A stretch of 64,000 nucleotides of DNA from Styela clava. Its lineage: Eukaryota. Made by a program: the position numbers and the translations under genes. The notes under the pieces were generated by a model. The model was not told the DNA's origin and searched no databases. It was given only the letters and a program-made list of their open reading frames with translations. The stretch spans positions 8,928,001-8,992,000 of the forward strand of contig NC_135259.1 in NCBI RefSeq assembly GCF_964204865.1, written 5' to 3'. Below are positions 32,862 through 64,000 of the stretch, one piece after another (the stretch's first letter is position 1; each line of letters begins with the position of its first letter).

Positions 32862-34706
32862 ATGGCAAGCTTGAAGCTTTACATCAAGGTAATCTAAGGA
32901 AATAATATAAGACCATAAGAAACATGAATTACGTGCATTATAGTAATTGACGGTTTCATACGGGAATGATCGTATTCTAAAGAATTACTTTTTGTAAACT
33001 TACTATATTTGTGACCGATATTCATCCGTAGGCTTAATATGACGACGAAACAATATGCTTATAACAGACTTTAGTAAATGACCAGATGATATATTATGTA
33101 AATTTTCGTATAATATGGTTGTATTGATAGATGATATATTTTTGTGTCCCATCATATTTTTAAGTAATGAGTATATGTAGGTTTAAATATAAAAGTCTAA
33201 CGAGGTTTTTGTTTTTTTAGATTGTTGCATTATGCTCTGTCTGTCTTATCAGCGTATCTTCATTTGACCCTGAGTAAGTGTTTAGTGATGTTCGCCAATT
33301 TTTTGTAATATATTTATCGGCGTTTTGAGATAGATTGGATTATTAAACTAATATCTAGTATTAATGTATTATTTAAATGTCATACATTGTATAATTTAGG
33401 GTAGAATTAATTCTGACTAGTGCGGTGCTAAAGGATTTAAAAAAAAAATTATTTATTTTGTTAAAAAATAACCTTCATACAGAATTTTAGAATGGTGTAT
33501 TTGCTTATTTATTCGTATAAATATTACTCTTTAACAAAATCGTATGACTCATTAACAAAAATTATCTTTTCTTACAGCTCAGACTTTATAAGAACTCACA
33601 ACTGCAAAGTCAATAAAACAGAAACAGTAGATGATGGATTTGCTTCTTATTACTTGCATGGGTGAGTATCGAGTACATATTTTCAACTTTACGAGAGAGT
33701 ATAAAAAATGAGTCTGAATTTCCTACGTGCTTTGAATCATTTATCTGCTTTATTACAAAGCTATAGTGATATTCTTATTTCTGCCGAGTAATACCACTCG
33801 GCCAATTAATATAATTTTAGGTGGACACAGATACCACATGTTGTCGCAAAGAGCAATACATACTTATATTTTGCTTGGAGAATAAAATAGCTAATTTATA
33901 CTTCCCTCCAGTTGTGAAACCTTACACAATTTTACAATTCATCCATTCACGGTATTCGTATTTTCAGGATTGATTGTCTAAACTTGAAGCCAAGTTCTTT
34001 CCCAAGCGCCATATGTTCATCCACAAGATGTCGCGAACCTATAAATGGAACACCTTTGTCTGGCAAAAGATACGAACCAAAAGAAGTATTGTTTAAACTA
34101 CACTTTGACAGTCGTCTAAATGGCAAATTTACAAAATCACTAACAGTTGCATGCAGGTATGTTTTTTTATCATATTTTATTGCAATATTTAAATTACAAT
34201 GGCCCTTTTCAACATAATTAGTATAAATTTGAAATCTCTAAAATACTAAAAATGCTGACTAACATAAGAAATTGCTGTAATATTTAACCTCTCAATAAAA
34301 CAAAAGTTGGGCAGCTATATATTGGTAAACACAAGACTGAAAAGTAAACCATTATTTTTTTCGACAAAGATCGTTCTGAATATGATTTCGTTTATTTTTT
34401 CTATTTTCAGTCAACTAATCAAAGTTAATTTAGATTTCAAAAGGGTATGTTATATTAAAGGTGTATGATAATTCCTCTTCGCCTTGTTAATTAGAAATAG
34501 ATCATACAATACCTTTTATGGCATTATAAATAATGAAATTTTAAACTAGAAAAGTGATCCAACATTTAAGATTTTACTTTAGATGTGTCAAAGTCGAAAA
34601 ATTGACTAAACGGCGAAAAGGAAGACGGGGCCGAAAAGGAGGAAAAGGCAAAGACAAGAAATCTCGTCGAGGAAAAAAAGCGAGAAAAGCTCACACAGAC
34701 TCATAA
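32862..34706 (+). CDS. IL-17-like secreted cystine-knot cytokine with basic tail, copy 1 (158 aa, 5 exons)
   Basis: Exons 32862-32888, 33221-33273, 33578-33661, 33968-34156, 34583-34706 (477 nt). Product MASLKLYIKIVALCSVCLISVSSFDPDSDFIRTHNCKVNKTETVDDGFASYYLHGIDCLNLKPSSFPSAICSSTRCREPINGTPLSGKRYEPKEVLFKLHFDSRLNGKFTKSLTVACRCVKVEKLTKRRKGRRGRKGGKGKDKKSRRGKKARKAHTDS. Signal peptide, A-x-C-x4-C-x-x-P-x-x-G and VACxCV as in IL-17. The gene model is strong; the family call is moderate. Confidence 0.8.
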
Positions 34707-35120
34707 TGCTTCATTGCCGAACTGTTCAGACGTGATTGAAATTGAAAATGTTTTGTTACCTATTATTTATATATTAGTAATCTATTTTTTCATGATTTCG
34801 TTTAAAAGGTAAAAATATTTGAAGCTGACTTTTGTTTTCATTATATTCATACATATTTATGAAATGCAATATTATTTTGGGGAATCCAAGTTTGCTTCAG
34901 TGTTAAATCGTATAAAATATTTTCAAAAGTAATTATATTTATTATATTTTAATGTATTTATTTATCTATTCTATTTATTATTTCCACTGAAAATTGTTAT
35001 TTCTTTTAAATATTTTTATAATGTTAATCGACCAAATTTATAGTTTTCTATTAATTATTATTTCAACTAGTTTTATTGAAGTCATGGTGCAAAAATTTAC
35101 ATATTTATATATATTTGCTA
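34707..35120 (+). promoter_or_regulatory. AU-rich-element-containing 3' region of the IL-17-like gene
   Basis: Multiple ATTTA pentamers, including overlapping TATTTATTTAT (~34956) and TTATTTAT (~34763). The background is AT-rich, so significance is limited. Confidence 0.4.
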
Positions 35121-35609
35121 TTTTGGTGCTTCTAATTATTTTAAATAAATTACTTTCTGCATAACATGAGCATCTATGATATAGGTGTAGATATGAAAAA
35201 GTTGAGTGGATAAGTTTATAACCGTTTTTTGAGGGATTTTGCTTTTGAGTGAAGTGTGAGCGCGAGTGGAACATTTACCCACATCGGTAAGACCGATTAC
35301 ATCATCGTCACCACGATAATACTTATTATCTCATGCTTGAGCTGCGCTTTCTTTATATTGTTCTCTCACCTGTCACGGAGAATAACCTCATGCTTATTAC
35401 AGACTTTAGTGCAGGAGTCGAAAACCTTTTGTCGCTCGCGTGCCAAAATTAAGGGGTGCGAGTCATTGGCGGGCCTCCCATATTTTTAGAAAGTTGAAAA
35501 CCGAACGGATGATACGTTTTATAAAAAAAATCAAGCAGTGATACATCTCTCGGATCGAATATTGATTTATTTCCTCATTGCATCTCAAAAAAGTCCCTTT
35601 GAATATTTT

Positions 35610-35861
35610 CGGCGCCATTGAACCCTTTGGACTTAGCATCAACTTTTCTGCGTTTAGTTGCCATTAATTAAACGAGTTCAATAAACGAGTAATTGTGAAT
35701 TTTAATATAATATAGGGTACACGTGTCTCACAATAAATTCTGTTGCGTAACATTCTGTATGTCAAAACAGCTGTTTTGCTACTATAAGTGAAGTGTCGCG
35801 GGCCGGGTTATATTACTCCGCGGGCCGGATCCGGCGTAGGGCCGTAGGATGCCGACCCCTG
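35610..35861 (-). mobile_element. 5' end of a hAT (Charlie/SPIN/Buster-type) DNA transposon with transposase start, truncated; repeated ending at 41899, 47933, 53992, 59869
   Basis: The minus strand begins CAGGGGTCGGCA (hAT-like TIR) with GGCCCGCG subterminal repeats. An ATG at 35664 then gives MATKRRK(V/F)DA(K/E)(S/C)KGFN, resembling the KRKVDxExRxF N-terminus of SPIN/GTF2IRD2-type transposases. Confidence 0.65.
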
Positions 35862-36024
35862 CTTTATTGAATGTCCATATGATATAAGATGTAAACTTAG
35901 ATGGTAGTAAATATTTTGTATGATATGGTTGTAATGATACGTGATATATTTTCGTGTCCCATCATATTTTAGGTAATAAGTAAATGTGAGTGCTAATATA
36001 AAACTTTAACATTTTTGTTTTTAG

Positions 36025-36077
36025 ACTGTCGCATTATGTTGCATCTGTATTATCAGCGTATCTTCATTTGATCCTGA
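36025..36077 (+). pseudogene. Orphan duplicate of the IL-17-like exon 2 (signal-peptide exon) with flanking intron-1 homology; also at 42063, 48097, 54154, 60015
   Basis: 53-nt exon TVALCCICIISVSSFDP versus IVALCSVCLISVSSFDP, flanked by AG/GT. Upstream 35862-36024 aligns with intron 1 (33069-33220). No matching exon 1 or exon 3. Confidence 0.8.
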
Positions 36078-36945
36078 GTAAGAGTTGAGTAATTTCACAG
36101 TTATCTTGACGTGTTCTAGTTATCGTAATTTGCAATGAATTAACCAGAGGTTCTTTAAATGTGCGTTTCATTGTCGCACTTTATTAGATTACTTTTTTTA
36201 TTTTATATTTTAAACAGATTCACAGTGATTTGTATCATAATATTACAGCATCTGGAGTAATTTTTTATAAATGATATTCGTTTGATTGCTATTTTATTGT
36301 AGTATGTTTTTATGTGACTCCTGTTTTAAACAAAAGGTTGTACGTATACGACGAATCTTACATGCTAATGTCTTTCGTATTTATGTTCTATCCGCTAGGG
36401 AGTACACGAGAGGCAATTTATAATTGTTGATAAAATGACATTACATTTTCCCACCGTTCTCTGGCCCTCTATTTGATAACTTTCAAATTGGAACGTCTAT
36501 GTACACCTAATTGTTTTAAATGAATTTGGTGGGTGTATTTATTCACTTTTGAATTTCATGCAATGTATTTTTGAATTTTAAAGTGAGATTGAGATAAATT
36601 CACGTAACAATCAGTAAAAATAGACAGATAATGTTTCAGATCCACGATAACAAAAGCTACTTTAAAAAATTTTATAGACCAAAGTAAAATGAGCCGTCAA
36701 TTAATGGTATGACGTGAAATAAAATTTTTTTTTTATAAAACCGGCGTTTGTAGTGTATATGTTCATAATATAATATCTCGGTATTAATGTGATAACAAAA
36801 ATTTGTTCGTAGTTTTCCAAATGCATTAGAGTGGCTTTGTGATACTTTGCGTCACATCAATTCAAGATATTTAAATTGTCCAGCGCAATACACATAAATG
36901 AGAGCAAAAAGATGAAATAATTGGCTTCCAACATTTCCAACACTC

Positions 36946-37290
36946 TACTGGGGGGGGGGGTTCGACGGAGTTCCGCAGTTACATTTCAGGATTACCGCAA
37001 GTTTACATCTTGAAGTATAATTTTTCACGGGTATATTGTTTAAACATATTCAAATAACTCTTAGATTTGCAAATATTATTGAACTTGTATCATTTTGTTT
37101 TGACAGTTTCACATTATTAGAGATTGATTGTATAAATGTGTAATATATACTTATAGTTTATACAAATTTATATTTTATATTAGATTATATATAGTGTGTA
37201 AAATAACGTATTGCAAACTATTGTATTGGGGTTCCCCAAACCTCCAGAATATTCCATAGAAGTTCCACTCCACCGGAAAGGTTGAAAATG
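36946..37290. mobile_element. Degenerate hAT-like MITE (A), present in every unit (also ~31162-31521)
   Basis: Imperfect inverted ends gtgg(g)ttttcgac... and ...aaaggttgaaaat around an AT-rich core. The left end is clearest in the 31162 and 42984 copies. No clear TSD. Confidence 0.5.
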
Positions 37291-37313
37291 ACCCGTCTAT
37301 TGATTTCATTCAA

Positions 37314-37844
37314 CATCGTTTTCCAAACCTATTTTCCCGGAACACCTACGCTTTTATCTCGCCTCGCGGAACACCAAAAAATAAAAAGGTAATATTGATA
37401 ATGAAAGAATCGTGTAATGGATTTACCTTGTACCCCAACTTGCACAACTGGTTTATCGCGACATCTTTTGAGGTTTACAGTTTTAATCCAACAATTCATT
37501 GAAAAGGGTGCTCTCCAACAAATTTAGCCTATATAATAAAATTAAAAAGTTTGCTTCAACCTTAGCAATTGAAAAACTAGACCGATAGTTAACGATATTC
37601 AACGGTTCACAAAAGTGTCATGCTTTGCATACTGTTACGAGACCTGTCTACCTGCTTAGATAGCAAGGCCTGTCTGCCTTATGTCGCCAGTTGAAAGACA
37701 AATTTACGACCCAGAGGCGTCGAAGTACAGCCAAGATCGCCATGGCGGTCAATTTAGTTGCAATTTCGATTACTGTTCCGCGGAACACTCCAAAGTAGCT
37801 CTCAGAACAGTAGTGTTCCAAGGAACACAGTTTGAGAAACGCTG
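37314..37844. mobile_element. hAT-like MITE (B), present in every unit; shorter version at 31536-31773
   Basis: Ends CATCGTTT(T/C)(C/T)CAAAC... and ...GGAACACAGTTTGAGAAACGCTG form imperfect TIRs, with internal GGAACAC repeats. This element is the source of the recurrent 76-77-aa ORFs. Confidence 0.6.
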
Positions 37845-38895
37845 GACTACAGCTTTTCACAATGAGACTTATTCTCAGCACAATAAAACACCAGGATCGA
37901 GTATTAATTAATGTAAATCATTTTTTGCAGACGAGGACTGGTCATGAATAAGCGAAATCATTGACACTGATTTTGAAAAATGAACTTTAGTAACAGAATA
38001 TCCGTTAAATGGCGTGTCCTATGTTTTTATTCATAAATATAATATTGTCCAATGCTTTATTTTAATCCTAAATACTCCATGTGATCTGACGTTGGTACAA
38101 GTCTTAACTTTATTTTTCACAGGTCAACAAGTTTGTCAGTGGTAAAGTACGTTCCATATTCAAAAATTTCGTCATATACAATAGCAAATTAGAAATGATG
38201 TTATTTTCAAATTCGGAAATAATTAAATTGTATTTTTCTACTTCGTCCGATAACGTTAGATTTCATCAGAAGCGGTGTATTTGGATTCTTACTTAGATTT
38301 TGGAATGTTGTGGCTATCGTGAAAGGGCTTTACCCCGTCGGTAACTCTGTAATGTTTGCGAAGACCAATCAAATGGTCTTCATCAATAATATCCGCAAAC
38401 ATACATAATCATATAAAAATTTCATGATATATTTGTGATCCGTAACTAATAAACCTTACAGATTTTGAAATATTATATTGTACTTTAGCACAGCGAAGAA
38501 GAAAATGAACTTTGTGTATCTTTCATGGCGGTAAGAATGGTTACATCATCGTCACCGCAGAAACATTTTACTATCTCACGATTGCGTTACGCTCTCGTTC
38601 TCTCGTTTGTCACGGGGAATCACCTTTACGGTAAAGCCGTATTTATTTATTCGTCAAATTATCGCTGCTTCAAAATCAATATCTATTCTACATTGCTAAC
38701 CAAATAGTGCGATTGGATTGAAATCCCCACTTTAGATTATGTATTATCCGCTAAACTAAATATATGAACGACAAGACAGAATGTTCATCAAAGCAGTTAA
38801 ACAAGATATTGTACGTAGAACGGTATCAGACTACAAGTTTATAATATCGAGATTACTACTCATATTTTTGAAGAAAAAAAGTTTATCAAACCGCT

Positions 38896-40738
38896 ATGGC
38901 AAGCTTGAAGCTTTACATCAAGGTAAGCTAAGGAAATAGTATAAGACCATAAGAAACATGAGTTACGTGCATTATAGTAATTGACGGTTTCATACGGGAA
39001 TGATCGTATTCTAAAGAATTACTTTTCGTAAACTTACCTATATTTGTGTCTGATCTTCATCCGTGGGCTTAATATGACGACGGAACAATATGCTTATAAC
39101 AGACTTTAGTAAATGGCCAGATGATATATTATGTAAATTTTTGTATAATATGGTTCTATTGATAGATGATATATTTTTGTGTCCCATCATATTTTTAAGT
39201 AATGAGTATATGTAGGTTTAAATATAAAAGTCTAACGAGGTTTTTGTTTTTTTAGATTGTTGCATTATGCTCTGTCTGTCTTATCAGCGTAACTTCATTT
39301 GACCCTGAGTAAGTGTTAAGTGATGTTCGCTAATTTTTCGTAATATATTTATCGGCGTTTTAAGATAGATTTGATTATTAAACTAATATCTAGTATTAAT
39401 GTATTAATTAAATGGCATACATTGTATAATTTAGGGTAGGATTAATTCTGACTAGTGCGTTGCTAAACGTATTGAAAAAAAAAAATGTTTATTTTGTTAA
39501 AAAATAACCTTCATACAGAATTTTAGAATGGTATATTTGCTTATTTATTCGTATAAATATTACTCTTTAACAAAATCGTATGACTCATTAACAAATAATA
39601 TCTTTTCTTATAGCTCAGAGTTTATAAGAACTCACAACTGCAAAGTCAATAAAACAGAAACAGTAGATGATGGATTTGCTTCTTATTACTTGCATGAGTG
39701 AGTATCGAGTATATATTTCAACTTTACGAGAGAGTATAAAAATGAGTCTGAATTTCCTACGTGCTTTATTTATTGATCTGTTTTATTACAAAGCTATAGT
39801 GATATTCTTATTTCTGCTGAGTAATACCACTCAGCATATTAATATAATTTTAGCTAGACACAGATTCCACATTTTTGTCGCAAAGAGCAATACTTATTTA
39901 TATTTTGATTGGAGAATAAACCAGCTAATTTATACTTCCCTCCCGTTATAAAACCTTGCAAAATTTTACGATTCATTCATCTACGATATCCGTATTTTCA
40001 GGGTCAATTGTATAAACTTAGAGCCAAGTTCTTTCCCAAGCGCCATATGTTCATCCACAAGATGTCGCGAACCAATAAATGGAAAACCTTTGTCTGGCAA
40101 AAGATACGAACCAAAAGAAGTATTGTTTAAACTACACTTTGACAGTCGTCTAAATGGCAAATTCACAAAATCACTAACAATTGCATGCAGGTATGTTTTT
40201 TTATCATATTTTATTTCAATATTTAAATTACAATGGCCCTTTTCAACATAATTAGTATAAATTTGAAATCCCTAAAATACTAAAAATGCTGACTTACATA
40301 AGAAATTGCTGTAATATTTAACCTCCCAATAAAACAAAAGTTGGGCAGCTGTATATTGATAAACACAAGACTGAAAAGTAAACCATAATTTTTTTTCGAC
40401 AAAGATCATTCTGAATATGATTTCGTTTATTTTTTGTATTTTCAGTCAACTAATCAAAGTTAATTTAGATTTCAAAAGGGTATGTTATATTGAAGGTGTA
40501 TGATTCCTCTTCGCCTTGTTAATTAGAAATAGATCATACAATACCACTTATGGCATTATAAATAATGAAATTTTAAACTAGAAAAGTGATCCAACATTTA
40601 ATATTTTACTTTAGATGTGTCAAAGTCGAAAAATTGACTAAACGGCGAAAAGGAAGACGGGGCCGAAAAGGAGGAAAAGGCAAAGACAAGAAATCTCGTC
40701 GAGGAAAAAAAGCAAGAAAAGCTCATAGAGATTCATAA
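38896..40738 (+). CDS. IL-17-like cytokine, copy 2 (intact)
   Basis: Same five exons with intact splice sites. Variant residues: VTSFDPDSEF, YLHEVNCINLEP, INGKP, LTIACRCV, AHRDS. Confidence 0.8.
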
Positions 40739-43700
40739 TGATTCATTGCCGAACTGTTCAGACGTGATTGAATTTGAAAATGTTTTGTTAGCTATTATTT
40801 ATATATTATTTATCTATTTTTTCATGACTTCGTTTAAGGTAAAAATATTTAAAGCTGAATTTTGTTCTCACTATATTCATACATATATATGAAATGCAAT
40901 ATTATTTTGGGGAATCCAAGTTTGCTTCAGTGTTAAATTGTATAAAATATTTTCAAAAATAATTATATTTTCATGTATTTATTTATCAACTCTATTTATT
41001 ATTTCCACTGAAAATTGTTCATTCTTTTAAATATTTTTATAATGTTAATCGACCAAATTTATAGTTTTCTATTAGCTATTATTTCAACTGGTTTTATTGA
41101 AGTCATGGTGCTGGACTTTACATAATTTAATATATTTGTTATTTTGGTGCTTCTAATAATTTTAAATAAATTACTTTCTGCGTAACATGGGCATCTATGA
41201 TATAGTTGTAGATATGAAAAAGTTGAGTGGATAAGTTTATAACCGTTTTTTGAGGGATTTGAGTGAAGTGTGAGCGCGAGTGGAATATTTACCTACGGCG
41301 ATAAGAACGATTACATCATCGTCACCACGATAATACTTATTATCTCATGCTTGAGCTGCGCTATCGTTATATTGTTCTTTCACCTGTCACGGAGAATAAC
41401 CTAATGCTTATTACAGACTTTAGTGCAGGAGTCGGAAACCTTTTGTCGCTCGCGTGCCAAAATTAAGGGGTGCGAGTCATTGGCGGGCCGCACATATTTT
41501 TAGAAAGTTGAAAACCGAACGGATGATACGTTTTATAATAAAAATCAAGCAGTGATACATCTCTCGAATCGAATATTGATTTATTTCCTCATTGCATCTC
41601 AAAAAATTGCATAGCATCTCAAAAAAGTCCCTTTGAATGTTTTCGGCGCCATTGAACCCTTTGCACTCAGCATCAAATTTTCTGCGTTTAGTTGCCATTA
41701 ATTAAACGAGTTCAATAAACGAGTATTTGTGAATTTTATTATAATTCAGGGTACACGTGTCTCACAATAAATTCTGTTACGTAACATTCTGTTGGTCAAA
41801 ACAGCTGTTTTGCTGCTATAATTCAGTGAAGTGTCGCGGGCCGGATTATATTACTCCGCGGGCCGGATCCGGCGCAGGGCCGTAGGTTGCCGACCCCTGC
41901 TTTAGTGAATGTCCATATGATATAAGATGTAAACTTGGATGGTAGTAAATATTTGGTATGATATGGTTGTATTGATACGTGATATATTTTCGTGTCCCAT
42001 TATATTTTGAGTAATAAGTAAATGTGAGTGCTAATATAAAACTTTAACGTTTTTGTTTTTAGATTGTCGCATTATGTTGCATCTGTCTTATCAGTGTATC
42101 TTCATTTGATTCTGAGTAAGAGTTGAGTAATTTCACAGTTATCTTGACGTGTTCTAGTTATCGTAATTTGCAATAAATTCCCCAGAAGTCCTTTAAATGT
42201 GCGTTTCATTGTCGCACTTTATTAGATTACTTTTTTATTTTATATTTTAAACAGATTCACATTGATTTGTATCATAATATTACAGCATCTGGAGTAATTT
42301 TTTATAAATGGTATTCGTTTGATTGCTATTTTATTGTAGTATGTTTTTATGTGACTCCTGTTTTAAACAAGAGGTTGTACGTATAGAACGAATCTTACAT
42401 GCTTAGGTCTTTCGTATTTATGTTCTATCCGCTAGGGAGTACACGAGAGGCAATTTATAATTGTTGATAAAATGACATTACATTTTCCCACCGTTCTCTG
42501 GCCCTCTATTTGATAACTTTCAAATTGGAACGTCTATGTACACCTAATTGTTTTAAATGAATTTGGTGGGTGTATTTATTCACTTTTGAATTTCATGCAA
42601 TGTATTTTTGAATTTTAAAGTGAGATTGAGATAAATTCACGTAACAATCAGTAAAAATATACAGATAATGTTTCAAATCCACGATAACAAAAGCTACTTT
42701 AAAAAATTTTATATACCAAAGTAAAATGAGCCGTCAATTAATGGTATGACGTGAAATTAGATTTTTTTTTTATAAAACCGGCGTTTGTAGTGTATATGTT
42801 CATAATGTAATATCTCGGTATTAATGTGATAACAAAAATTTGTTCGTAGTTTTCCAAATGCATTTGAGTGGCTTTGTGATACTTTGCGTCACATCAATTC
42901 AAGATATTTAAATTGTCCAGCGCAATACTCATAAAGGAGAGCAAAAAGATGAAATAATTGGCTTCCAACATTTCCAACACTCTACAGGTGGGTTTTCGAC
43001 GGAGTTCCGCAGTTACATTTCAGGATTACCGCAAGTTTACATCTTGAAGTATAATTTTTCACGGGTATATTGTTTAAACATATTCAAATAACTATTAGAT
43101 TTGCAAATATTATTGATATTGTATCATTTTGTTTTGACAGTTTCACATTATTAGAGATTGATTGTATAAATGTGTAATATATACTTATAGTTTATACAAA
43201 TTTATATTTTATATTAGATTATATATAGTGTGTAAAATAACGTATTGCAAACTATTGTATTGGGGTTCCCCAAACCTCCAGAATATTCCATAGAAGTTCC
43301 ACTCCACCGGAAAGGTTGAAAATGACCCGTCTATTGATTTCATTCAACATCGTTTTCCAAACCTATTTTCCCGGAACACCTACGCTTTTATCTCGCCTCG
43401 CGGAACACCAAAAAATAAAAAGGTAATATTGATAATGAAAGAATCGTGTAATGGATTTACCTTGTACCCCAACTTGCACAACTGGTTTATCGCGACATCT
43501 TTTGAGGTTTACAGTTTTAATCCAACAATTCATTGAAAAGGGTGCTCTCCAACAAATTTAGCCTATATAATAAAATTAAAAAGTTTGCTTCAACCTTAGC
43601 AATTGAAAAACTAGACCGATAGTTAACGATATTCAACGGTTCACAAAAGTGTCATGCTTTGCATACTGTTACGAGACCTGTCTACCTGCTTAGATAGCAA

Positions 43701-44929
43701 GGCCTGTCTGCCTTATGTCGCCAGTTGAAAGACAAATTTACGACCCAGAGGCGTCGAAGTACAGCCAAGATCGCCATGGCGGTCAATTTAGTTGCAATTT
43801 CGATTACTGTTCCGCGGAACACTCCAAAGTAGCTCTCAGAACAGTAGTGTTCCAAGGAACACAGTTTGAGAAACGCTGGACTACAGCTTTTCACAATGAG
43901 ACTTATTCTCAGCACAATAAAACACCAGGATCGAGTATTAATTAATGTAAATCATTTTTTGCAGACGAGGACTGGTCATGAATAAGCGAAATCATTGACA
44001 CTGATTTTGAAAAATGAACTTTAGTAACAGAATATCCGTTAAATGGCGTGTCCTATGTTTTTATTCATAAATATAATATTGTCCAATGCTTTATTTTAAT
44101 CCTAAATACTCCATGTGATCTGACGTTGGTACAAGTCTTAACTTTATTTTTCACAGGTCAACAAGTTTGTCAGTGGTAAAGTACGTTCCATATTCAAAAA
44201 TTTCGTCATATACAATAGCAAATTAGAAATGATGTTATTTTCAAATTCGGAAATAATTAAATTGTATTTTTCTACTTCGTCCGATAACGTTAGATTTCAT
44301 CAGAAGCGGTGTATTTGGATTCTTACTTAGATTTTGGAATGTTGTGGCTATCGTGAAAGGGCTTTACCCCGTCGGTAACTCTGTAATGTTTGCGAAGACC
44401 AATCAAATGGCCTTCATCAATAATATCCGCAAACATACATAATCATATAAAAATTTCATGATATATTTGTGATCCGTAACTAATAAACCTTACAGATTTT
44501 GAAATATTATATTGTACTTTAGCACAGCGAAGAAGAAAATGAACTTTGTGTATCTTTCATGGCGGTAAGAATGGTTACATCATCGTCACCGCAGAAACAT
44601 TTTACTATCTCACGATTGCGTTACGCTCTCGTTCTCTCGTTTGTCACGGGGAATCACCTTTACGGTAAAGCCGTATTTATTTATTCGTCAAATTATCGCT
44701 GCTTCAAAATCAATATCTATTCTACATTGCTAACCAAATAGTGCGATTGGATTGAAAACCCCACTTTAGATTATGTATTATCCGCTAAACTAAATATATG
44801 AACGACAAGACAGAATGTTCATCAAAGCAGTTAAACAAGATATTGTACGTAGAACGGTATCAGACTACAAGTTTATAATATCGAGATTACTACTCATATT
44901 TTTGAAGAAAAAAAGTTTATCAAACCGCT

Positions 44930-49700: not shown

Positions 49701-50968
49701 ACGCTTTGCATACTGGCACGAGACCTGTCTACCTGCTTAGATAGCAAGGCATGTCTGCCTTATGTCGCCAGTTGAAAGACAAATTTACGACCCAGAGGCG
49801 TCGAAGTACGGCCAAGATCGCCATGGCGGTCAATTTAGTTGCAATTTCGATTGCTGTTCCGCGGAACACTCCAAAGTAGCTCTCAGAACAGTAGTGTTCC
49901 AGGGAACACAGTTTGAGAAACGCTGGACTACAGCTTTTCACAATGAGACTTATTCTCAGCACAATAAAACACCAGGATCGAATATTCATTAATGTAAATC
50001 ATTTTTTGCGGACGAGGACTGGTCATGAATAAGCGAAATCATTGACACTGATTTTGAAAAATGAACTTTAGGAACAGAATATTCGTTAAACGACGTGTCC
50101 TATGTTTGTATTCATAAATACCATATTGTCCAATGCTTTATTTTAATCCTAAATACCCCACGTGATCTGACGTTGGTACAAGTCTTAACTTTATTTTTCA
50201 CAGGTCAACAAGTTTGTCAGTGGTAAAGTACGTTCCATATTCAAATATTTCGTCATATACAATAGCAAATTAGAAATGATGTTATTTTCAAATTCGGAAA
50301 TAATTAAATTGTATTTTTCTACTTCGTCCGATAACGTTAGATTTCATCAGAAGCGGTGTATTTGGATTCTTACCTAGATTTTGGAATGTTGTGGCTATCG
50401 TGAAAGGGCTTCACCCCATCGGTAACTCTATAATGTTTGCGAAGACCAATCAAATGACCTTCATCAATAATATCCGCAAACATATATAATCATATAAAAA
50501 TTTCATGATATATTTGTGATCCGTAACTAATGAACCTTACAGATTTTGAAATATTATATTGTACTTTAGCACAGCGAAGAAGAAAATGAACTTTGTGTAT
50601 CTCACATGGCGGTAAGAATGGTTACATCAACGTCACCGCAGAAACATTTTACTATCTCACGATTGAGTTACGCTCTCGTTTGTCACGGGGAATAACCTTT
50701 ACGGAAAAGCCGTCTTTATTTATTCGTCAAATTATCGCTGCTTCAAAATCAATATCTATTCTACATTGCTAACCAAATAGTGCGATTGGACTGAAAACCC
50801 CACTTTAGATTATGTATTATCCGCTAAACTAAATAAATGAACGATAAGATAGAATGTTCATCAAAGCAGTTAAACGAGATATTGTACGCAGAAAGGTATC
50901 AGACTACAAGTTTATAATATCGAGATTACTACTCTTATTTTTGAAGATAAAAAGTTTATCAAACCGCT

Positions 50969-52814: not shown

Positions 52815-55800
52815 TGCTTCATTGCCGAACTGTTTTGACGTGATTGAAATTGAAAATGTTTTGTTAGCTATTATTTATATATTATTTATCTAGTTTTTCA
52901 TGATTTCGTTTAAAAGGTAAAAATATTTGAAGCTGACTTTTGTTTTCTTTATATTCATACATATATATGAAATGCAATATTATTTGGGGAATCCAAGTTT
53001 GCTTCAGTGTTAAATTGTATAAAATATTTTCAAAAGTAAAAATATTTATTATATTTTCATGTATTTATTTATCAATTCTATTTATTATTTCCACTGAAAA
53101 TTGTTCCTTCTTTTAAATATTTTTATAATGTTAATCGACCAAATTTATAGTTTTCTATTAATTATTATTTCAACTAGTTTTATTGAAGTCATGGTGCTAA
53201 AATTTACATATTTTAATATATTTGCTATTTTGGTGCTTCTAATAATTTTAAATAAATTACTTTCTGCATAACATGGGCATCTATGATATAGGTGTAGATA
53301 TGAAAAAGTTGAGTGGATAAGTTTATAAACGTTTTTTGAGGGATTTTGCCTATGAGTGAAGTGTGAGCGCGAGTGGAATATTTACCCACATCGATAAGAC
53401 CAATTACATCATGGTCACCACGATAATACTTATTATCTCATGCTTGAGCTGCACTTTCGTTATTTTGTTCTCTCACCTGTCACGGAGAATAACCTCATGC
53501 TTATTACAGACTTCAGTGCAGGAGTCGGAAATCTTTTGTCGCTCGCGTGCCAAAATTAAGGGGTGCGAGTCATTGGCGGGCCGCACATATTTTTAGAAAG
53601 TTGAAAACCGAACGGATGATACGTTTTATAAAAAAAATCAAGCAGTGATACATCTCTCGAATCAAATATTGATTTGTTTCCTCATTGCATCTCAAAAAAT
53701 TGCATAGCATCTCAAAAAAGTCGCTTTGAATATTTTCGGCGCCATTGAACCCTTTGGACTTATCATCAACTTTTCTGCGTTTAGTTGCCATTAATTAAAC
53801 GAGTTCAATAAACGAGTAATTGTGAATTTTAATATAATTTAGGGTACACGTGTCTCACAAAAAATTCTGTTACGTAACATTCTGTTGGTCAAAACAGCTG
53901 TTTTGCTACTATAATTCAGTGAAGTGTCGCGGGCCGGGTTATATTACTCCGCGGGCCGGATCCGGCGTAGGGCCGTAGGTTGCCGACCCCTGCTTTAGTG
54001 AATGTCCATATGATATAAGATGTAAACTTAGATGGTAGTAAATATTTTGTATGATATGGTTGTAATGATACGTGATATATTTTCGTGTCCCATCATATTT
54101 TAGGTAATAAGTAAATGTGAGTGCTAATAGAAAACTTGTTTGTTTGTTTTTAGACTGTCGCATTATGTTGCATCTGTCTTATCAGCGTATCTTCATTTGA
54201 TCCTGAGTAAGAGTTGAGTAATTTCACAGTTATCTTGACGTGTTCTAGTTATCGTAATTTGCTATAAATTCCCCAGAGGTCCTTTAAATGTGCGTTTCAT
54301 TGTCGCACTTCATTAGAGTACCTTTTTTTTAATTATTAACAGATTCACATTGATTTGTTTTTATCATAATATTACAGCATCTGAAGTAATTTTTCATAAA
54401 TGGTATTCGTTAGATTGCTATTTTATTGTAGTATGTTTTCATGTGACTCCTGCTTTAAACAAAAGGTTGTACGTATACGACAAATCTTACATGCTAATGT
54501 CTTTCGTGTTTATGTTCTATCCGCTAGGGAGTCCACGAGAGGCAATTTATGTTTGTTGATAAAATGACATTACATTTTCCCACCGTTCTTTGGCCCTCTA
54601 TTTGATAACTTTCAAATTGGAACGTCTAGGTACCCTTAATGGCTTTAAATGAATTTGGTGGGTGTATTCATTCACTTTTGAATTTTATGCAATGTATTTT
54701 TGAATTTTAAAGTGAAATTGAGATAAAATCACCTTACAGGCAGTAAAAATAGACAGAAAATGGTTCAAATCCACGATAACAAAAGCTACTAAAAAATTTT
54801 TATAGACCAAAGTAAAATTAGCCGTCATTTAATGGTATGACGTGAAATTAGATTTTTTTTTTATAAAACCGGTGTTTGTAGTGTATATGTTCATAATATA
54901 ATATCTCGGTATTAATGTGATAACAAAAATTTGTTCGTAGTTTTCCAAATGCATTTGAGTGGGTTCGACGACGGAGTTCTGCAGTTACATTTCAGGATTA
55001 CCGCAAGTTTACATCTTGAAGTATAATTTTTCACGGGTATAGCAAATGTTATTAAACTTGTATCATTGTGTTTTGACAGTTTCACATTATTAGAGATTGA
55101 TTGTATAAATGTGTAATATATATTTATAGTTTATACAAATTTATATAGCCCTACAGCCTTACAAGTATACTGTAGATAGGTGTGTAAAATAACGTATTGC
55201 AAACTATTGTGTTGGGGTTCCCCAAACGTCCAGAATATTCCATAGAAGTTCCACTCCATCGAAAAGGTAAAAAATGAACCGTCTGTTGATTACATTCAAC
55301 ATCGTTACCCAAACTTATTTTTCCGGAACACCTACGCTTATATCTCGCCTCGCGGAACACCAAAACATAAGAAGGTAATATTGATAATGAAAAAATTGTG
55401 TAATGGATTAACCTTGTGCCTCAACTTGCACAACTGGCTTATCGTGACATCTTTTGAGGTTTACAGTTTTAATCCAACAATTCATTGAAAAGGGTGCTCT
55501 CCAACAAATTTAGCCTATATAATAAAATTAAAAAGTTTACTTCAGCCTTAGCAATTGAAAAACTAGGCCGATAGTTAACGATATTCAACGGTTCACAAAA
55601 ATGTCATGCTTTGCATACTGGCACGAGACCTGTCTACCTGCTTAGATAGCAAGGCCTGTCTGCCTTATGTCGCCAGTTGAAAGACAAATTTACGACCCAG
55701 AGGCGCCGCAGTACGGCCAAGATCGCCATAGCGGTCAATTTAGTTGCAATTTCGATTACTGTTCCGCGGAACACTCCAAAGTAGCTCTCAGAGCAGTAGT

Positions 55801-56881
55801 GTTCCAAGGAACACAGTTTGAGAAACGCTGGACTACAGCTTTTCACAATGAGACTTATTCTCAGCACAATGAAACACCAGGATCGAGTATTAATTAATGT
55901 AAATCATTTTTTGCAGACGAGGACTGGTCATGAATAAGCGAAATCATTGACACTGATTTTGAAAAATGAACTTTAAGAACAGAATATCCGTTAAATGGCG
56001 TGTCCTATGTTTTTATTCATAAATACAATATTGTCCAATGCTTTATTTTAATCCTAAATACCCCACGTGATCTGACGTTGGTACAAGTCTTAACTTTATT
56101 TTTCACAGGTCAACAAGTTTGTCAGTGGTAAAGTACGTTCCATATTCAAATATTTCGTCATATACAATAGCAAATTAGAAATGATGTTATTTTCAAATTC
56201 GGAAATAATTAAATTGTATTTTTCTACTTCGTCCGATAACGTTAGATTTCATCAGAAGCGGTGTATTTGGATTCTTACTTAGATTTTGGAATGTTGTGGC
56301 TATCGTGAAAGGGCTTTACCCCGTCGGTAACTCTGTAATGTTTGCGAAGACCAATCAAATGGCCTTCATCAATAATATCCGCAAACATATATAATCATAT
56401 AAAAATTTCATGATATATTTGTGATCCGTAACTAATAAACCTTACAGATTTTGAAATATTATATTGTACTTTAGCACAGCGAAGAAGAAAATGAACTTTG
56501 TGTATCTCACATGGCGGTAAGAATGGTTACATCATCGTCACCGCAGAAACATTTTACTATCTCCCGATTGCGTTACGCTCTCGTTCTCTCGTTTGTCACG
56601 GGGAATCACCTTTACGGTAAAGCCGTATTTATTTATTCGTCAAATTATCGCTGCTTCAAAATCAATATCTATTCTACATTGCTAACCAAATAGTGCGATT
56701 GGACTGAAAACCCCACTTTAGATTATGTATTATCCGCTAAACTAAATATATGAACGACAAGACAGAATGTTCATCAAAGCAGTTAAACAAGATATTGTAC
56801 GTAGAACGGTATCAGACTACAAGTTTATAATATCGAGATTACTACTCATATTTTTGAAGAAAAAAAGTTTATCAAACCGCT

Positions 56882-58725
56882 ATGGCAAGCTTGAAGCTTT
56901 ACATCAAGGTAAGCTAAGGAAATAATATAAGACCATAAGAAACATGAGTTACGTGCATTATAGTAATTGACGGTTTCATACGGGAATGATCGTATTCTAA
57001 AGAATTACTTTTCGTAAACTTACCTATATTTGTGTCTGATCTTCATCCGTGGGCTTAATATGACGACGGAACAATATGCTTATAACAGACTTTAGTAAAT
57101 GGCCAGATGATATATTATGTAAATTTTTGTATAATATGGTTCTATTGATAGATGATATATTTTTGTGTCCCATCATATTTTTAAGTAATGAGTATATGTA
57201 GGTTTAAATATAAAAGTCTAACGAGGCTTTTGTTTTTTTAGATTGTTGCATTATGCTCTGTCTGTCTTATCAGCGTAACTTCATTTGACCCTGAGTAAGT
57301 GTTAAGTGATGTTCGCTAATTTTTCGTAATATATTTATCGGCGTTTTAAGATAGATTTGATTATTAAACTAATATCTAGTATTAATGTATTAATTAAATG
57401 GCATACATTGTATAATTTAGGGTAGGATTAATTCTGACTAGTGCGTTGCTAAACGTATTGAAAATAAAAATGTTTATTTTGTTAAAAAATAACCTTCATA
57501 CAGAATTTTAGAATGGTATATTTGCTTATTTATTCGTATAAATATTACTCTTTAACAAAATCGTATGACTCATTAACAAATAATATCTTTTCTTATAGCT
57601 CAGAGTTTATAAGAACTCACAACTGCAAAGTCAATAAAACAGAAACAGTAGATGATGGATTTGCTTCTTATTACTTGCATGAGTGAGTATCGAGTATATA
57701 TTTCAACTTTACGAGAGAGTATAAAAATGAGTCTGAATTTCCTACGTGCTTTATTTATTGATCTGTTTTATTACAAAGCTATAGTGATATTCTTATTTCT
57801 GCTGAGTAATACCACTCAGCATATTAATATAATTTTAGCTAGACACAGATTCCACATTTTTGTCGCAAAGAGCAATACTTATTTATATTTTGATTGGAGA
57901 ATAAACCAGCTAATTTATACTTCCCTCCCGTTATAAAACCTTGCAAAATTTTACGATTCATTCATCTACGATATCCGTATTTTCAGGGTCAATTGTATAA
58001 ACTTAGAGCCAAGTTCTTTCCCAAGCGCCATATGTTCATCCACAAGATGTCGCGAACCAATAAATGGAAAACCTTTGTCTGGCAAAAGATACGAACCAAA
58101 AGAAGTATTGTTTAAACTACACTTTGACAGTCGTCTAAATGGCAAATTCACAAAATCACTAACAATTGCATGCAGGTATGTTTTTTTTTATCATATTTTA
58201 TTGCAATATTTAAATTACAATGGCCCTTTTCAACATAATTAGTATAAATTTGAAATCCCTAAAATACTAAAAATGCTGACTAACATAAGAAATTGGTGTA
58301 ATATTTAACCTCTCAATAAAACAAAAGTTGGGCAGCTGTATATTGATAAACAGAAGACTGAAAAGTAAACCATAATTTTTTTTCGACAAAGATCATTCTG
58401 AATATGATTTCGTTTATTTTTTGTATTTTCAGTCAACTAATCAAAGGTAATTTAGATTTCAAAAGGGTATATTATATTGAAGGTGTATGATTCCTCTTCG
58501 CCTTGTTAATTAGAAATAGATCATACAATACCTCTTATGGCATTATAAATAATGAAATTTCAAACTAGAAAAGTGATCCAACATTTAATATTTTACTTTA
58601 GATGTGTCAAAGTCGAAAAATTGACTAAACGGCGAAAAGGAAGACGGGGCCGAAAAGGAGGAAAAGGCAAAGACAAGAAATCTCGTCGAGGAAAAAAAGC
58701 AAGAAAAGCTCATAGAGACTCATAA
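56882..58725 (+). CDS. IL-17-like cytokine, copy 5 (intact, copy-2 type)
   Basis: Five exons intact. Coding sequence matches the copy 2/3 type. Confidence 0.8.
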
Positions 58726-61700
58726 TGCTTCATTGTCGAACTGTTCAGACGTGATTGAATTTGAAAATGTTTTGTTAGCTATTATTTATATATTATTTAT
58801 CTATTTTTTCATGATTTCGTTTAAGGTAAAAATATTTAAAGCTGACTTTTATTCTCACTATATTCATACATATATATGAAATGCAATATTATTTTGGGGA
58901 ATCCAAGTTTGCTTCAGTGTTAAATTGTATAAAATATTTTCAAAAATAATTATATTTTTATGTATTTATTTATCTATTCTATTTATTATTTCCACTGAAA
59001 ATTGTTATTTCTTTTAAATATTTTTATAATGTTAATCGACCAAATTTATAGTTTTCTATTAATTATTATTTCAACTAGTTTTATTGAAGTCATGGTGCAA
59101 AAATTTACATATTTATATATATTTGCTATTTTGGTGCTTCTAATTATTTTAAATAAATTACTTTCTGCATAACATGGGCATCTATGATATAGGTGTAGAT
59201 ATGAAAAAGTTGAGTGGATAAGTTTATAACCGTTTTTTGAGGGATTTTCCTTTTGAGTGAAGTGTGAGCGCGAGTGGAACATTTACCCACATCGGTAAGA
59301 CCGATTACATCATCGTCACCACGATAATACTTATTATCTCATGCTTGAGCTGCGCTTTCTTTATATTGTTCTCTCACCTGTCACGGAGAATAACCTCATG
59401 CTTATTACATACTTTAGTGCAGGAGTCGAAAACCTTTTGTCGCTCGCGTGCCGAAATTGGGGGGTGCGAGTCATTGGCGGGCCTCCCATATTTTTAGAAA
59501 GTTGAAAACCGAACGGATGATACGTTTTATAAAAAAAATCAAGCAGTGATACATCTATCGAATCGAATATTGATTTATTTCCTCATTGCATCTCAAAAAA
59601 GTCCCTTTGAATATTTTCGGCGCCATTGAACCCCTTGGACTTAGCATCAACTTTACTGCGTTTAGTTGCCATTAATTAAACGAGTTCAATAAACGAGTAA
59701 TTGTGAATTTTAATATAATTTAGGGTACACGTGTCTCACAATAAATTCTGTTGCGTAACATTCTGTTTGTCAAAACAGCTGTTTTGCTACTATAAGTGAA
59801 GTGTCGCGGGCCGGGTTATATTACTCCGCGGGCCGGATCCGGCGTAGGGCCGTAGGTTGCCGACCCCTGCTTTATTGAATGTCCATATGATATAAGATGT
59901 AAACTTAGATGGTAGTAAATATTTTGTATGATATGGTTGTAATGATACGTGATATATTTTAGGTAATAAGTAAATGTGAGTGCTAATATAAAACTTAAAC
60001 GTTTTTGCTTTTAGACTGTCGCATTATGTTGCATCTGTCTTATCAGCGTATCTTCATTTGATCCTGAGTAAGTGTTGAGTAATTTCACAGTCATCTTGAC
60101 GTGTTCTAGGTAACGTAATTTGCAATAAATTCTCCAGAGGTCCTTTAAATGTGCGTTTCATTGTCGCACCTTATTAGATTATTATTTTTTTAATTTTAAA
60201 TTTTAAACAGATTCTCATTGATTTGTATCATAATATTACAGCATCTGAAGTAATTTTTCATAAATGGTATTTGTTAGATTGCTGTTTTTATTGTAGTATG
60301 TTTTTATGTGACTCCTGTTTTAAATAACAGGTTGTACGTATACGACGAATCTTACATGCTAATGTCTTTCGTGTTTATGTTCTATCCGCTAGGGAGTACA
60401 CGAGAGGCAATTTATAATTGTTGATAAAATGACATTACATTTTCTCACCGTTCTCTGGCCCTCTATTTGATAACTTTCAAATTGGAACGTCTTGGTCCCC
60501 TAATTGTTTTAAATGAATTTGGTGGGTGTATTCATTCACTTTTGAATTTGATGCAATGTAATTTTGAATTTTAAAGTGAGATTGAGATAAATTCACGTAA
60601 CAAGCAGTAAAAATAGACAGAAAATGATTCAAATCTACAATAACAAAAGCTATTTAATAGACCAAAGTAAAATGAGCCGTCAATTAATGGTATGACGTAA
60701 AATTAGATTTTTTTTTATAAAACCGGCGTTTGTAGTGTATATGTTAATAATATAATATCTCGGTATTAATGTGATAACAAAAATTTGTTCGTAGTTTTCC
60801 AAATGCATTTGAGTGGCTTTGTGAAACTTGGCGTCACATCAATTCAAGATATTTAAATTGTCCAGCGCAATACTCATAAAGGAGAGCAAAAAGATAAAAT
60901 AATTGACATCCAACATTTCCAACACTCTACAGGGGGGTTTTCGACGGAGTTCCGCAGTTACATTTCAGGATTACCGCAAGTTTACATCTCGAAGTATAAT
61001 TTTTCACGGGTATAGCAAATGTTATTAAACTTGTATCATTGTGTTTTGACAGTTTCACATTATTTGAGATTGATTGTATAAATGTGTAATATATATTTAT
61101 ATTTTATACAAATTTATATAGCCCTGCAGCCTTACAAGAAGTATACTGTAGATAGGTGTGTAAAATAACGTATTGCAAACTATTGTATTGGGGTTCCCCA
61201 AACCTCCAGAATATTCCGTCGAAGTTTCACTCCACCGAAAAGGTTAAAAATGACCCGTCTATTGAGTACATTCAACATCGTTTCCCAAACTTATTTTTTT
61301 CCGGAACACCTACGCTTTTATCTCGCCTCGCGGAACACCAAAACATAAGAAGGTAATATTGATAATGAAAGAATTGTGTAATGAATTTACCTTGTGCCTC
61401 AACTTGCACAACTGGCATATCGCGACATCTTTTGAGGTTTTCAGTTTTAATCAAACAATTCATTGAAAAGGGTGCTCTCCAAAAAATTTAGCCTATATGG
61501 TAAAATTAAAAAGTTTACTTCAACCTTAGCAATTGAAAAACTAGGCCGATAGTTAACGATATTCAAAGGTTTACAAAAATGTCATGCTTTGCATACTGGC
61601 ACGAGACCTGTCTACCTGCTTAGATAGCAAGGCCTGTCTGCCTTATGTCGCCAGTTGAAAGACAATTTTACGACCCAGATGCGTCGAAGTACGGCCAAGA

Positions 61701-62861
61701 TCGCCATAGCGGTCAATTTAGTTGCAATTTCGATTACTGTTCCGCGGAACACTCCAAAGTAGCTCTCAGAACAGTAGTGTTCCAAGGAACACAATTTGAG
61801 AAACGCTGGACTACAGCTTTTCACAATGAGACTTATTCTCAGCACAATAAAGCACCAGAATCGAGTATTAATTAATGTAAATCATTTATTGCAGACGAGG
61901 ACTGGTCATGAATAAGCGAAATCATTGACACTGATTTTGAAAAATGAACTTTAAGAACAGAATATCCGTTAAATGGCGTGTCCTATGTTTTTATTCATAA
62001 ATACAATATTGTCCAATGCTTTATTTTAATCCTAAATACTCCACGTGATCTGACGTTGGTACAAGTCTTAATTTTATTTTTCACAGGTCAACAAGTTTGT
62101 CAGTGGTAAAGTACGTTCCATATTCAAATATTTCGTCATATACAATAGCAAATTAGAAATGATGTTATTTTCAAATTCGGAAATAATTAAATTGTATTTT
62201 TCTACTTCGTCCGATAACGTTAGATTTCATCAGAAGCGGTGTATTTGGATTCTTACTTAGATTTTGGAATGTTGTGGCTATCGTGAAAGGGCTTTACCCT
62301 ATCAGTAACTCTGTAATGTTTGCGAAAACCAATCAAATGGCCTTCATCAATAATATCCGCAAACATATATAATCATATAAAAATTTCATGATATATTTGT
62401 GATCCGTAACTAATAAACCTTACAGATTTTGAAATATGATATTGTACTTTAGCACAGCGAAGAAGAAAATGAACTTTGTGTATCTCACTTGGCGGTAAGA
62501 ATGGTTACATCATCGTCACCGCAGAAACATTTTACTATCTCACGATTGAGTTACGCTCTCGTTCTCTCGTTTGTCACGGGGAATCACCTTTACGGTAAAG
62601 CCGTATTTATTTATTCGTCAAATTATCGCTGCTTCAAAATCAATATATCTATTCTACATTGCTAACCAAATAGTGCGATTGGACTGAAAACCCCACTTTA
62701 GATTATGTATTATCCGCTAAACTAAATATATGAACGACAAGACAGAATGTTCATCAAAGCAGTTAAACGAGATATTGTACGTAGAAAGGTATCAGACTAC
62801 AAGTTTATAATATCGAGATTACTACTCATATTTTTGAAGAAAAAAAGTTTATCAAACCGCT

Positions 62862-64000
62862 ATGGCAAGCTTGGAGCTTTACATCAAGGTAATCTAAGGA
62901 AATAATATAAGACCATAAGAAACATGAATTACGTGCATTATAGTAATTGACGGTTTCATACGGGAATGATCGTATTCTAAAGAATTACTTTTTGTAAACT
63001 TACCTATATTTGTGACCGATATTCATCCGTAGGCTCAATATGACGACGGAACAATAAGCTTATAACAGACTTTAGTAAATGGCCAGATGATATATTATGT
63101 AAATTTTCGTATAATATGGTTCTATTGATAGATGATATATTTTTGTGTCCCATCATATTTTTAAGTAATGAGTATATGTAGGTTTAAATATAAAAGTCTA
63201 ACGAGGTTTTTGTTTTTTTAGATTGTTGCATTATGCTCCGTCTGTCTTATCAGCGTATCTTCATTTGACCCTGAGTAAGTGTTTAGTTATGTTCGCCAAT
63301 TTTTCGTAATATATTTATCGGCGTTTTAAGATAGATTGAATTATTAAACTAATATCTAGTATTAATGTATTAATTAAATGTCATACATTGCATAATTTAG
63401 GGTAAAATTAATTCTGACTAGTGCGGTGCTAAAGAATTTAAAAAAAATTATTTATTTTGTTAAAAAATAACATTCATACAGAATTTTGGAATGGTATATA
63501 TGTCTATTTATTCGTATAAATAATACTCTTCATTAAAATCGTACGGTTCTTTAACAAATATTATCTTTTTCCTATAGCTCAGAGTTTATAAGAACTCACA
63601 ACTGCAAAGTCAATAAAACAGAAACAGTAGATGATGGATTTGCTTCTTATTACTTGCATGAGTGAGTACCGAATACATATTTCAACTTTCTAAGACAGTG
63701 TAAAAATGAGTCTGAATTTCCTACGTGCTTTGATTTATTTATCTGTTTTATTACAAAGCTAGTGATATTCTTATTCCGGCTGAGTAATACCACTCGGCAT
63801 TAATATAATTTTAGCTAGACACAGATTCCACATGTTTGTCGCAAAGAGCAATACTTTTTTATATTTTGCTTGGAGAATAAACTAGCTAATTTATACTTCC
63901 CTCCCTTTATAAAACCTTGCAAAATTTTACGATTCATTCATCTACGATATCCGTATTTTCAGGGTTAATTGTATAAACTTAGAGCCAAGTTCTTTCCCAA
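62862..64000 (+). CDS. IL-17-like cytokine, copy 6 (truncated by the window end in exon 4)
   Basis: MASLELYIK exon 1, exons 2-3 intact, exon 4 starts at 63963 (VNCINLEPSSFP). Confidence 0.75.

Follow-up and report, generated by a model that had tools for sequence, protein, structure and literature searches.

A 64,000-nucleotide stretch of the genome of the ascidian Styela clava (RefSeq assembly GCF_964204865.1, contig NC_135259.1, positions 8,928,001 to 8,992,000 of the forward strand), referred to here as the window, contains a 6-kb repeat that self-BLAST places head to tail from position 32310 to the window end. Every repeat unit carries a five-exon gene on the + strand with a 477-nt coding sequence (CDS) for a protein of 158 amino acids (aa), and each of these genes is intact and probably belongs to a highly divergent, lineage-specific branch of the interleukin-17 (IL-17) superfamily. 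An earlier interpretation made from the DNA letters, called here the sequence-only reading, had proposed an array of at least six divergent IL-17-like cytokine genes at this place, and the analysis presented below follows up that proposal.

Architecture of the array and its genes

Alignment of the repeats (self-BLAST, MAFFT) resolves exactly six high-identity units, five of them complete in the window; the sixth is truncated by the window edge, is whole in the genome when the window is extended with genome DNA, and is followed by a seventh unit of only about 77% identity. With unit 6 completed in this way, the MAFFT alignment gives unit lengths of 5.5–6.05 kb and pairwise identities of 94.0–99.0% of aligned bases, units 2 and 3 forming the closest pair (98.96%), and the proposed array of six or more genes in a 6-kb repeat stands as described. 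Tandem Repeats Finder missed the array because its longest period is 500, against a unit of 6 kb. In the spacer between 40800 and 44900 no open reading frame reaches 80 aa, and no terminal inverted repeats were convincing.

The exons of unit 2 are bounded by polypyrimidine/AG acceptors and by donors of the GTAAGT-, GTGAGT- or GTATGT- type; exons were mapped across the units by blastn-short, and the protein motifs, sought in six frames, were all found on the + strand. The N-terminus encoded by exons 1 and 2 is hydrophobic and signal-like and is followed in exon 3 by Cys36 and GFASY; Cys58, A-x-C-x4-C and the first C-x-C cysteine lie in exon 4, and the second, with a K/R tail, in exon 5. The motifs listed in the sequence-only reading (GFASY, A-x-C-x4-C, A-C-R-C-V, H-N/S-C and V/I-N/D-C) are all present. 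No copy contains a stop or a frameshift, so that the intact five-exon, 158-aa product claimed for the five complete units is found in all of them and, after genome extension, in the sixth as well. The further claim that this product is the same in all five is right as to gene model and length; identical proteins are encoded only by units 2, 3, and 5, from which those of units 1, 4, and 6 differ by 10, 13, and 5 residues, respectively. The word "divergent" likewise suits the comparison with canonical IL-17s and not the copies among themselves, which are near-identical.

The exon model has been predicted independently by RefSeq, without an attached function. XP_077973334.1/XP_077973335.1 (LOC144428250; P0008) equals the model of units 2, 3, and 5 exactly, and XP_077973336.1 (LOC144428251; P0009) equals the unit 6 protein exactly. 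The stop-free frame around exon 4, used as a query, also retrieved a 158-aa S. clava "uncharacterized protein LOC120338200." Two older isoforms of that locus, X1 and X2 (XP_039262083.1, P0001, and XP_039262082.1, P0010), are at least four residues away from every unit; they look like unit mosaics, which suggests that the earlier assembly had collapsed the array, represented another haplotype or led to models that cross units. At the exon 3/4 and 4/5 junctions the spliced model is colinear with an intronless paralogue on C6 (L040, described below) and with a relative from Logan (P0004), which shares no more than 41% identity with any S. clava locus and therefore comes from another organism; both lend the junctions indirect support.

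Table 1. Units, gene copies and orphan exons of the array (window coordinates; positions beyond 64000 are window-extended)
Feature	Position	Strand	Basis or remark
U1	32310-38345	+	self-BLAST, MAFFT
U2	38346-44379	+	self-BLAST, MAFFT
U3	44380-50426	+	self-BLAST, MAFFT
U4	50427-56331	+	self-BLAST, MAFFT
U5	56332-62309	+	self-BLAST, MAFFT
U6	62310 to ~67854	+	genome DNA extension
Copy 1, 158 aa	exons 32862-32888, 33221-33273, 33578-33661, 33968-34156, 34583-34706	+	intact; 10 residues differ from copy 2
Copy 2, 158 aa	exons 38896-38922, 39256-39308, 39614-39697, 40002-40190, 40615-40738	+	protein equals XP_077973334.1
Copy 3, 158 aa	exons 44930-44956, 45290-45342, 45648-45731, 46036-46224, 46649-46772	+	CDS identical to copy 2
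Copy 4, 158 aa	exons 50969-50995, 51329-51381, 51686-51769, 52077-52265, 52691-52814	+	most changed; 13 residues differ from copy 2
Copy 5, 158 aa	exons 56882-56908, 57242-57294, 57599-57682, 57987-58175, 58602-58725	+	protein equals copies 2 and 3; one synonymous difference
Copy 6, 158 aa	exons 62862-62888, 63222-63274, 63578-63661, 63963-64151, 64539-64662	+	intact; window ends in exon 4
Orphan second exon 2, 53 nt	36025-36077	+	spacer of unit 1
Orphan second exon 2, 53 nt	42063-42115	+	spacer of unit 2
Orphan second exon 2, 53 nt	48097-48149	+	spacer of unit 3
Orphan second exon 2, 53 nt	54154-54206	+	spacer of unit 4
Orphan second exon 2, 53 nt	60015-60067	+	spacer of unit 5

The orphan second exon 2 found in each of units 1–5 is about 86% identical to exon 2, keeps its AG and GT and has about 40 nt of upstream intron alongside; no exons 3–5 lie downstream of it in these units. 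Unit 6 lacks the orphan exon and has a deletion of about 440 bp at that place. Upstream of the array, an open frame at window positions 8947–9357 (+) matches Cyclin_C (E 1.2e-5, 25.7 bits) and probably represents a cyclin-gene exon, while a 428-aa frame at 6594–7880 has no Pfam match.

Conservation and origin of the copies

The unit alignment contains 60 distinct indel events, none of which falls within the 477 CDS columns, against 5.05 expected (P(0) = 0.006), in keeping with the earlier statement that indels occur in the introns and spacers. Variable columns make up 7.1% of the CDS, 11.7% of the introns and 10.5% of the spacer, and the splice dinucleotides are conserved in all six units (8 of 8 in each, 48 of 48 in total). 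Since the CDS is free of indels and less variable than the introns, the reading frame is, to judge from the aligned units, under selection. Ratios of nonsynonymous to synonymous differences per site (pN/pS) are 0.4–0.6 in most copy pairs and 1.37 for U1–U4; resting on only 17–23 differences, they are compatible with mild constraint and allow no firm statement on diversifying selection.

Of the private changes in copy 4, 12 alter an amino acid, with six of these in the tail exon, and one is synonymous. This nonsynonymous excess is not significant (roughly P 0.15), and copy 4 is the sole copy that may be drifting or diversifying. That the array was amplified for dosage or diversification is conjecture. 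The six copies would be the outcome of recent unequal crossing-over atop an older birth-and-death expansion, and because three of them encode an identical protein, their simplest effect would be to raise dosage.

Paralogues and the genome-wide IL-17 repertoire

Some 30 paralogues form a cluster that extends over roughly 270 kb of the same chromosome (C13), with the array as its young end. A search with exon 4 found the six copies and about 25 increasingly distant paralogues at C13 8.997–9.231 Mb (8997460–9231407), together with two on C6. The C13 paralogues (L017–L039) form at least three subgroups, one of about 13 copies with the pattern NVYPS[IM]F..A.CSSRCK and another with VRCNNVYP..FIQAKC. 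Paralogues keep the boundaries of exon 4, and the first base of their exon 5 completes an Arg codon, after which comes Cys-Val-Lys/Arg; the intron therefore always lies inside C-x-C. This phase-2 intron is common to the whole C13 family, whereas the canonical IL-17 domains of S. clava are uninterrupted, and it is a clade marker.

The intronless paralogue L040 (C6:12880234–12883428) has an open reading frame at about 1333–1785 (+) of about 150 aa, which starts with a signal-like sequence of its own, contains G-F-A-P-Y and the same six cysteines and has a basic end. L040 could be a retrocopy or represent an ancestral intronless state. The second C6 match lies nearby, at C6:12853751.

A scan of the genome with the Pfam IL17 profile (PF06083) gave 32 canonical IL-17 exons above threshold, on C1, C2, C3, C5, C8, C10, and C19, and none on C13. 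These canonical exons (at least 32) lie mostly in tandem clusters, for example at C3 14.84–14.87 Mb and C5 15.02–15.08 Mb. The genome also gives seven SEFIR matches.

Sequence relationship to IL-17

Sequence evidence for kinship with IL-17 comes from a profile–profile comparison. A profile of 19 C13-family rows (A2) was aligned by hhalign to a profile of ten canonical Styela IL-17 exons (A3), with a probability of 90.6%, an E of 1.3e-6 and a score of 39.4 over 60 columns, and with all four knot cysteines and a P-x-x-[FIL] segment in register. The controls scored far less, 9.4 for the reversed template and 10.7 ± 2.1 (maximum 16.7) for 60 column shuffles. In the same alignment the array L-E-P stands opposite R-F-P of the canonical IL-17s, as expected from the earlier proposal that L-K/E-P replaces R-x-P. 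The resemblance can be followed in one paralogue subgroup, whose V-Y-P-S-I-F-L-R-A-E-C-S-S-R-C-K-D-P-V-T-G may be set against R-F-P-K-Y-I-L-Q-N-K-C-L-C-K-G-C-I-N-P-S-T-G of the canonical Styela proteins. At the level of the superfamily, homology to bona fide IL-17 is thus statistically supported by sequence comparison.

Other searches point the same way. IL17 is the sole Pfam family that recurs among the cluster paralogues, at sub-threshold E-values of 0.016–0.23 (12–16 bits), and no family member matches the NGF, Spaetzle or PDGF families of Pfam at E ≤ 10. In a language-model neighbor search, IL17 occurs in 25 of the 30 nearest clusters (score 0.90, 189 shared features), some neighbors bearing NGF or Spaetzle domains. 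In a tree, the C13 family and the canonical genes form distinct groups on either side of a branch that has 100/100 support and a length of about 3.5 changes per site. Word-based protein searches returned S. clava proteins and one Logan protein only. A HMMER scan of 1.8 billion representatives returned three relatives and three repetitive bacterial-type proteins, the latter taken for noise. In the literature searched, no link of IL-17 to Styela was found.

The HMMER test against PF06083 that the sequence-only reading had proposed was blank on the array protein; at this level the outcome favors IL-17 through the paralogues, in which IL17 alone recurs, and through the profile–profile match. Because the Pfam threshold is a detection criterion, we place the protein on a divergent branch within the superfamily and do not count it as a member of PF06083.

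Cysteine framework and basic tail

C71, C76, and C117 are invariant in all 19 family rows, as is C119 wherever exon 5 was found, and there is no Cys at the position of S-P-W, which holds Ala/Ser, or between C76 and C117. A two-disulfide knot pattern of tunicates and vertebrates has been described (PMC11087794). The framework C-x(3-4)-C ... C-x-C of the array proteins fits this two-disulfide (T2) type, for which the expected connectivity would be C71–C117 and C76–C119. The array has G-F-A-S-Y where the paralogues have G-F-A-P-Y/F, at the distance of S-P-W from the first knot Cys, a register counted against human IL-17A and lying outside the span of the hhalign alignment.

Two further cysteines accompany the knot. 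All 19 family rows have Cys58, which lies at the start of exon 4, and Cys36, 13–14 residues ahead of the conserved G-F-A, is present in every exon 3 found. As they lie at the two ends of the predicted first hairpin, a disulfide between them that staples the hairpin is plausible.

Past the knot, exon 5 encodes a tail of 39 residues with 21 K/R and 3 D/E. Most paralogues end four residues beyond C-x-C, and basic extensions occur only in the array, its two neighbors and the C6 gene. At the other end, residues 1–25 are hydrophobic and modeled as a helix at low confidence.

Predicted fold and dimer

An AlphaFold2 (AF2) model was built from a 19-row family alignment that contained no canonical IL-17. 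Its predicted local confidence (pLDDT) is 74 overall and 84–94 over residues 31–120, with a first hairpin at 36–45 and 50–58 and a long hairpin at 90–103 and 107–121. It replaced an earlier model from a four-row alignment (pLDDT 66), for which Foldseek gave IL-17 weakly (E 0.04, TM 0.2–0.3) and a second look with VIA-align nothing above Z 4. With the 19-row model, the best 50 Foldseek rows against the PDB that name an antigen are all IL-17A, IL-17F, IL-17AF or IL-25, at a probability of 1.00 and a TM on the target of up to 0.65; for one of the best 50, an antibody complex, the title leaves the antigen unnamed. This structural check, also proposed in the sequence-only reading, leaves the IL-17 assignment standing.

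VIA-align wide, a Foldseek-independent scan of 48,161 chains, ranked IL-17A first (Z 8.2, 3.5 Å over 82 residues) and IL-25 second (Z 7.6, 2.9 Å over 83), followed by a Fab–antigen complex (Z 7.3), NGF (5.7), PTTH (5.1), sclerostin and gremlin (4.6) and Spaetzle (4.3). IL-17A and IL-25 came first in both structure searches, ahead of NGF and Spaetzle, an outcome that, with the hhalign E-value, upholds the earlier assignment to a divergent IL-17 subfamily. On the evidence of these models, the array protein is predicted to have the IL-17 fold.

Two copies of the chain were predicted to form a symmetric side-by-side homodimer with a score of 0.41, against 0.01 for the best control. Among solved structures, 21 of 30 homodimers and none of 23 single chains came up to that mark (on eukaryotes, 17 of 29 and none of 30). 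The interface runs along the strands (residues 44–55, 62–67, 95–100, and 115–120), agreement between runs extends to at least 97% of contacts, and the partner has a pLDDT of at least 81. The dimer modeling suggested in the sequence-only reading gave this symmetric arrangement, with a reservation that is taken up below.

Interpretation and alternatives

We favor the view that each unit holds one intact gene of a divergent IL-17 branch. Its product would be secreted by way of the hydrophobic N-terminus, would dimerize as IL-17 does, knotted by disulfides, and would engage IL-17-receptor/SEFIR proteins, which the genome encodes. Cys36–Cys58 may staple the N-terminal beta-hairpin, whose strands a two-disulfide knot leaves untied. 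The polybasic tail may hold the cytokine on sulfated glycans, be they in mucus, matrix or tunic, or may be clipped at dibasic sites; either fate would make for a short-range, locally acting signal.

Several points weigh against this view. PF06083 has no match at E ≤ 10 in the array protein, whether the exon translations are used or P0001, the RefSeq record that served for full-length database tests and is four residues off units 2, 3, and 5; its best score among the paralogues is 16.0 bits (E 0.016), against a gathering threshold of 24 bits. Sequence searches of the PDB with exon 4, the full protein and a four-row profile were blank. Foldseek E-values are only 6e-3 to 3e-2, the VIA-align Z of 8.2 is at the edge of scores deemed common for that method, and the dimer score may come from solved IL-17 dimers that the predictor has memorized. 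Secretion, use of a receptor, the additional disulfide and what the tail does are things that we infer, and for the young copies the substitution counts show selection on the amino-acid sequence weakly.

A more far-reaching proposal is that the C13 cluster represents an unrecognized structural type of IL-17, in which a two-disulfide olfactorean knot is combined with a new disulfide of the N-terminal hairpin, Cys36–Cys58, the latter re-tying strands that were freed by loss of the ancestral third knot disulfide. The polycationic tail of the amplified subfamily would then be matrix-anchored or directly microbicidal, and with the 32 canonical genes the repertoire would exceed 60 genes, half of them invisible to domain searches, and would rival those of sea urchins and bivalves. 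Taken as a whole this proposal is rather unlikely, with perhaps some chance of being right.

Among the alternatives to an IL-17 cytokine, the main rival accepts descent from IL-17 and holds that the protein has been repurposed as a cationic effector, antimicrobial or binding to matrix or tunic, with the tail as the active part and the knot as a stable carrier. The haemocytes of S. clava are known for cationic antimicrobial peptides, the 21 K/R of the 39-residue tail have an exon of their own, the long tail is restricted to the array subfamily and two neighbors, and a high copy number would suit a product made in bulk. However, about 30 paralogues, most of them tail-less, keep the knot domain, the dimer interface and the Cys framework, which argues that the domain has a function of its own, and no antimicrobial family was matched. 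We regard this alternative as improbable.

The other two rivals have little support. The protein might belong to another family of cystine-knot ligands (neurotrophin, Spaetzle, PTTH or coagulogen-like), its likeness to IL-17 being convergent; IL-17 is regarded as a relative of the neurotrophins (PMC11087794), NGF, PTTH, proNGF, and Spaetzle are found at Z 4.3–5.7, and NGF or Spaetzle domains appear among the language-model neighbors. Yet IL-17A and IL-25 score about 2 Z higher and fill the best 50 of Foldseek, the cysteines follow the two-disulfide pattern of IL-17 and lack the third knot disulfide, and the profile match is to IL-17 exons, with none to the NGF, Spaetzle or PDGF families, all of which makes this origin very doubtful. 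Equally hard to credit is the suggestion that not all copies are working genes, some being silent young duplicates or products of an over-expanded assembly, since a CDS divergence (U1 and U2, for example, differ at 17 of 477 nt) that comes near the divergence of whole units, the 12 changed residues of copy 4 against one private synonymous change, and the failure of the older RefSeq isoforms X1 and X2 to equal any single unit are set against a CDS with no indels where five were expected and less variation than the introns, 48 of 48 splice dinucleotides kept, RefSeq models for several units, and differences of 1–6% between units, which therefore are not copies of one read set.

Comparison with known systems

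The divergent IL-17 branch proposed here shares with canonical IL-17s (PF06083; human IL-17A, IL-17F, and IL-25, and Ciona IL-17-1 to -3) a small, predicted secreted product with four knot cysteines, P-S-x-[FI] nine residues before the first knot Cys, a pair of long beta-hairpins and a predicted parallel homodimer, and these proteins are its best structural matches. It differs from them in its sub-threshold Pfam score, in A-S-Y (A-P-Y/F in paralogues) in place of S-P-W, in the phase-2 intron within C-x-C, in the extra Cys pair N-terminal of the knot, and in the 39-residue polybasic tail. The canonical IL-17 exons of S. clava itself are found in the same genome, likewise in tandem clusters, and are homologous at the level of profiles; unlike the array genes, they score 28–54 bits on PF06083, hold the whole domain in one exon, and carry C-L-C-K-G-C-I-D/N-P and G-C-T/H-C.

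Neurotrophins, Spaetzle, and PTTH have the overall cystine-knot growth-factor architecture in common with the array protein (Z 4.3–5.7), but their knot is complete with three disulfides, they rank lower, and there is no sequence-profile signal. For the tail, the closest parallels are analogies with unrelated sequence: isoforms of PDGF and VEGF and chemokines such as CCL21 and CCL28 are secreted signaling domains to which a separate 3′ exon adds a polybasic retention tail. These tails bind glycosaminoglycans, and that of CCL28 kills microbes. We know of no such tail in members of the IL-17 family. A tunicate-specific clade that joins a compensating extra disulfide to a polybasic tail would be a natural experiment in the stabilization of an incomplete knot and in cytokine range.

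The array is still within a well-known superfamily, and lineage-specific tandem expansions of IL-17 are already familiar in such animals. They have been reported in sea urchin, bivalves, octopus, and acorn worm (PMC8353272). Like these, the array reflects lineage-specific tandem duplication in a filter feeder, with homologues only in close relatives; the earlier examples, however, are recognizable IL-17s, mostly with the six-Cys invertebrate knot, whereas the Styela array would be the expansion, in a tunicate, of a clade that escapes domain searches. In Ciona, surveys give six to seven IL-17 genes (PMC8353272), far below the canonical count of at least 32 in S. clava. Counts of IL-17 genes in comparative immunology rest on domain searches, and about half of the IL-17-like repertoire of S. 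clava falls below the Pfam threshold and is annotated as "uncharacterized"; surveys that give tunicates three to seven IL-17 genes may therefore undercount.

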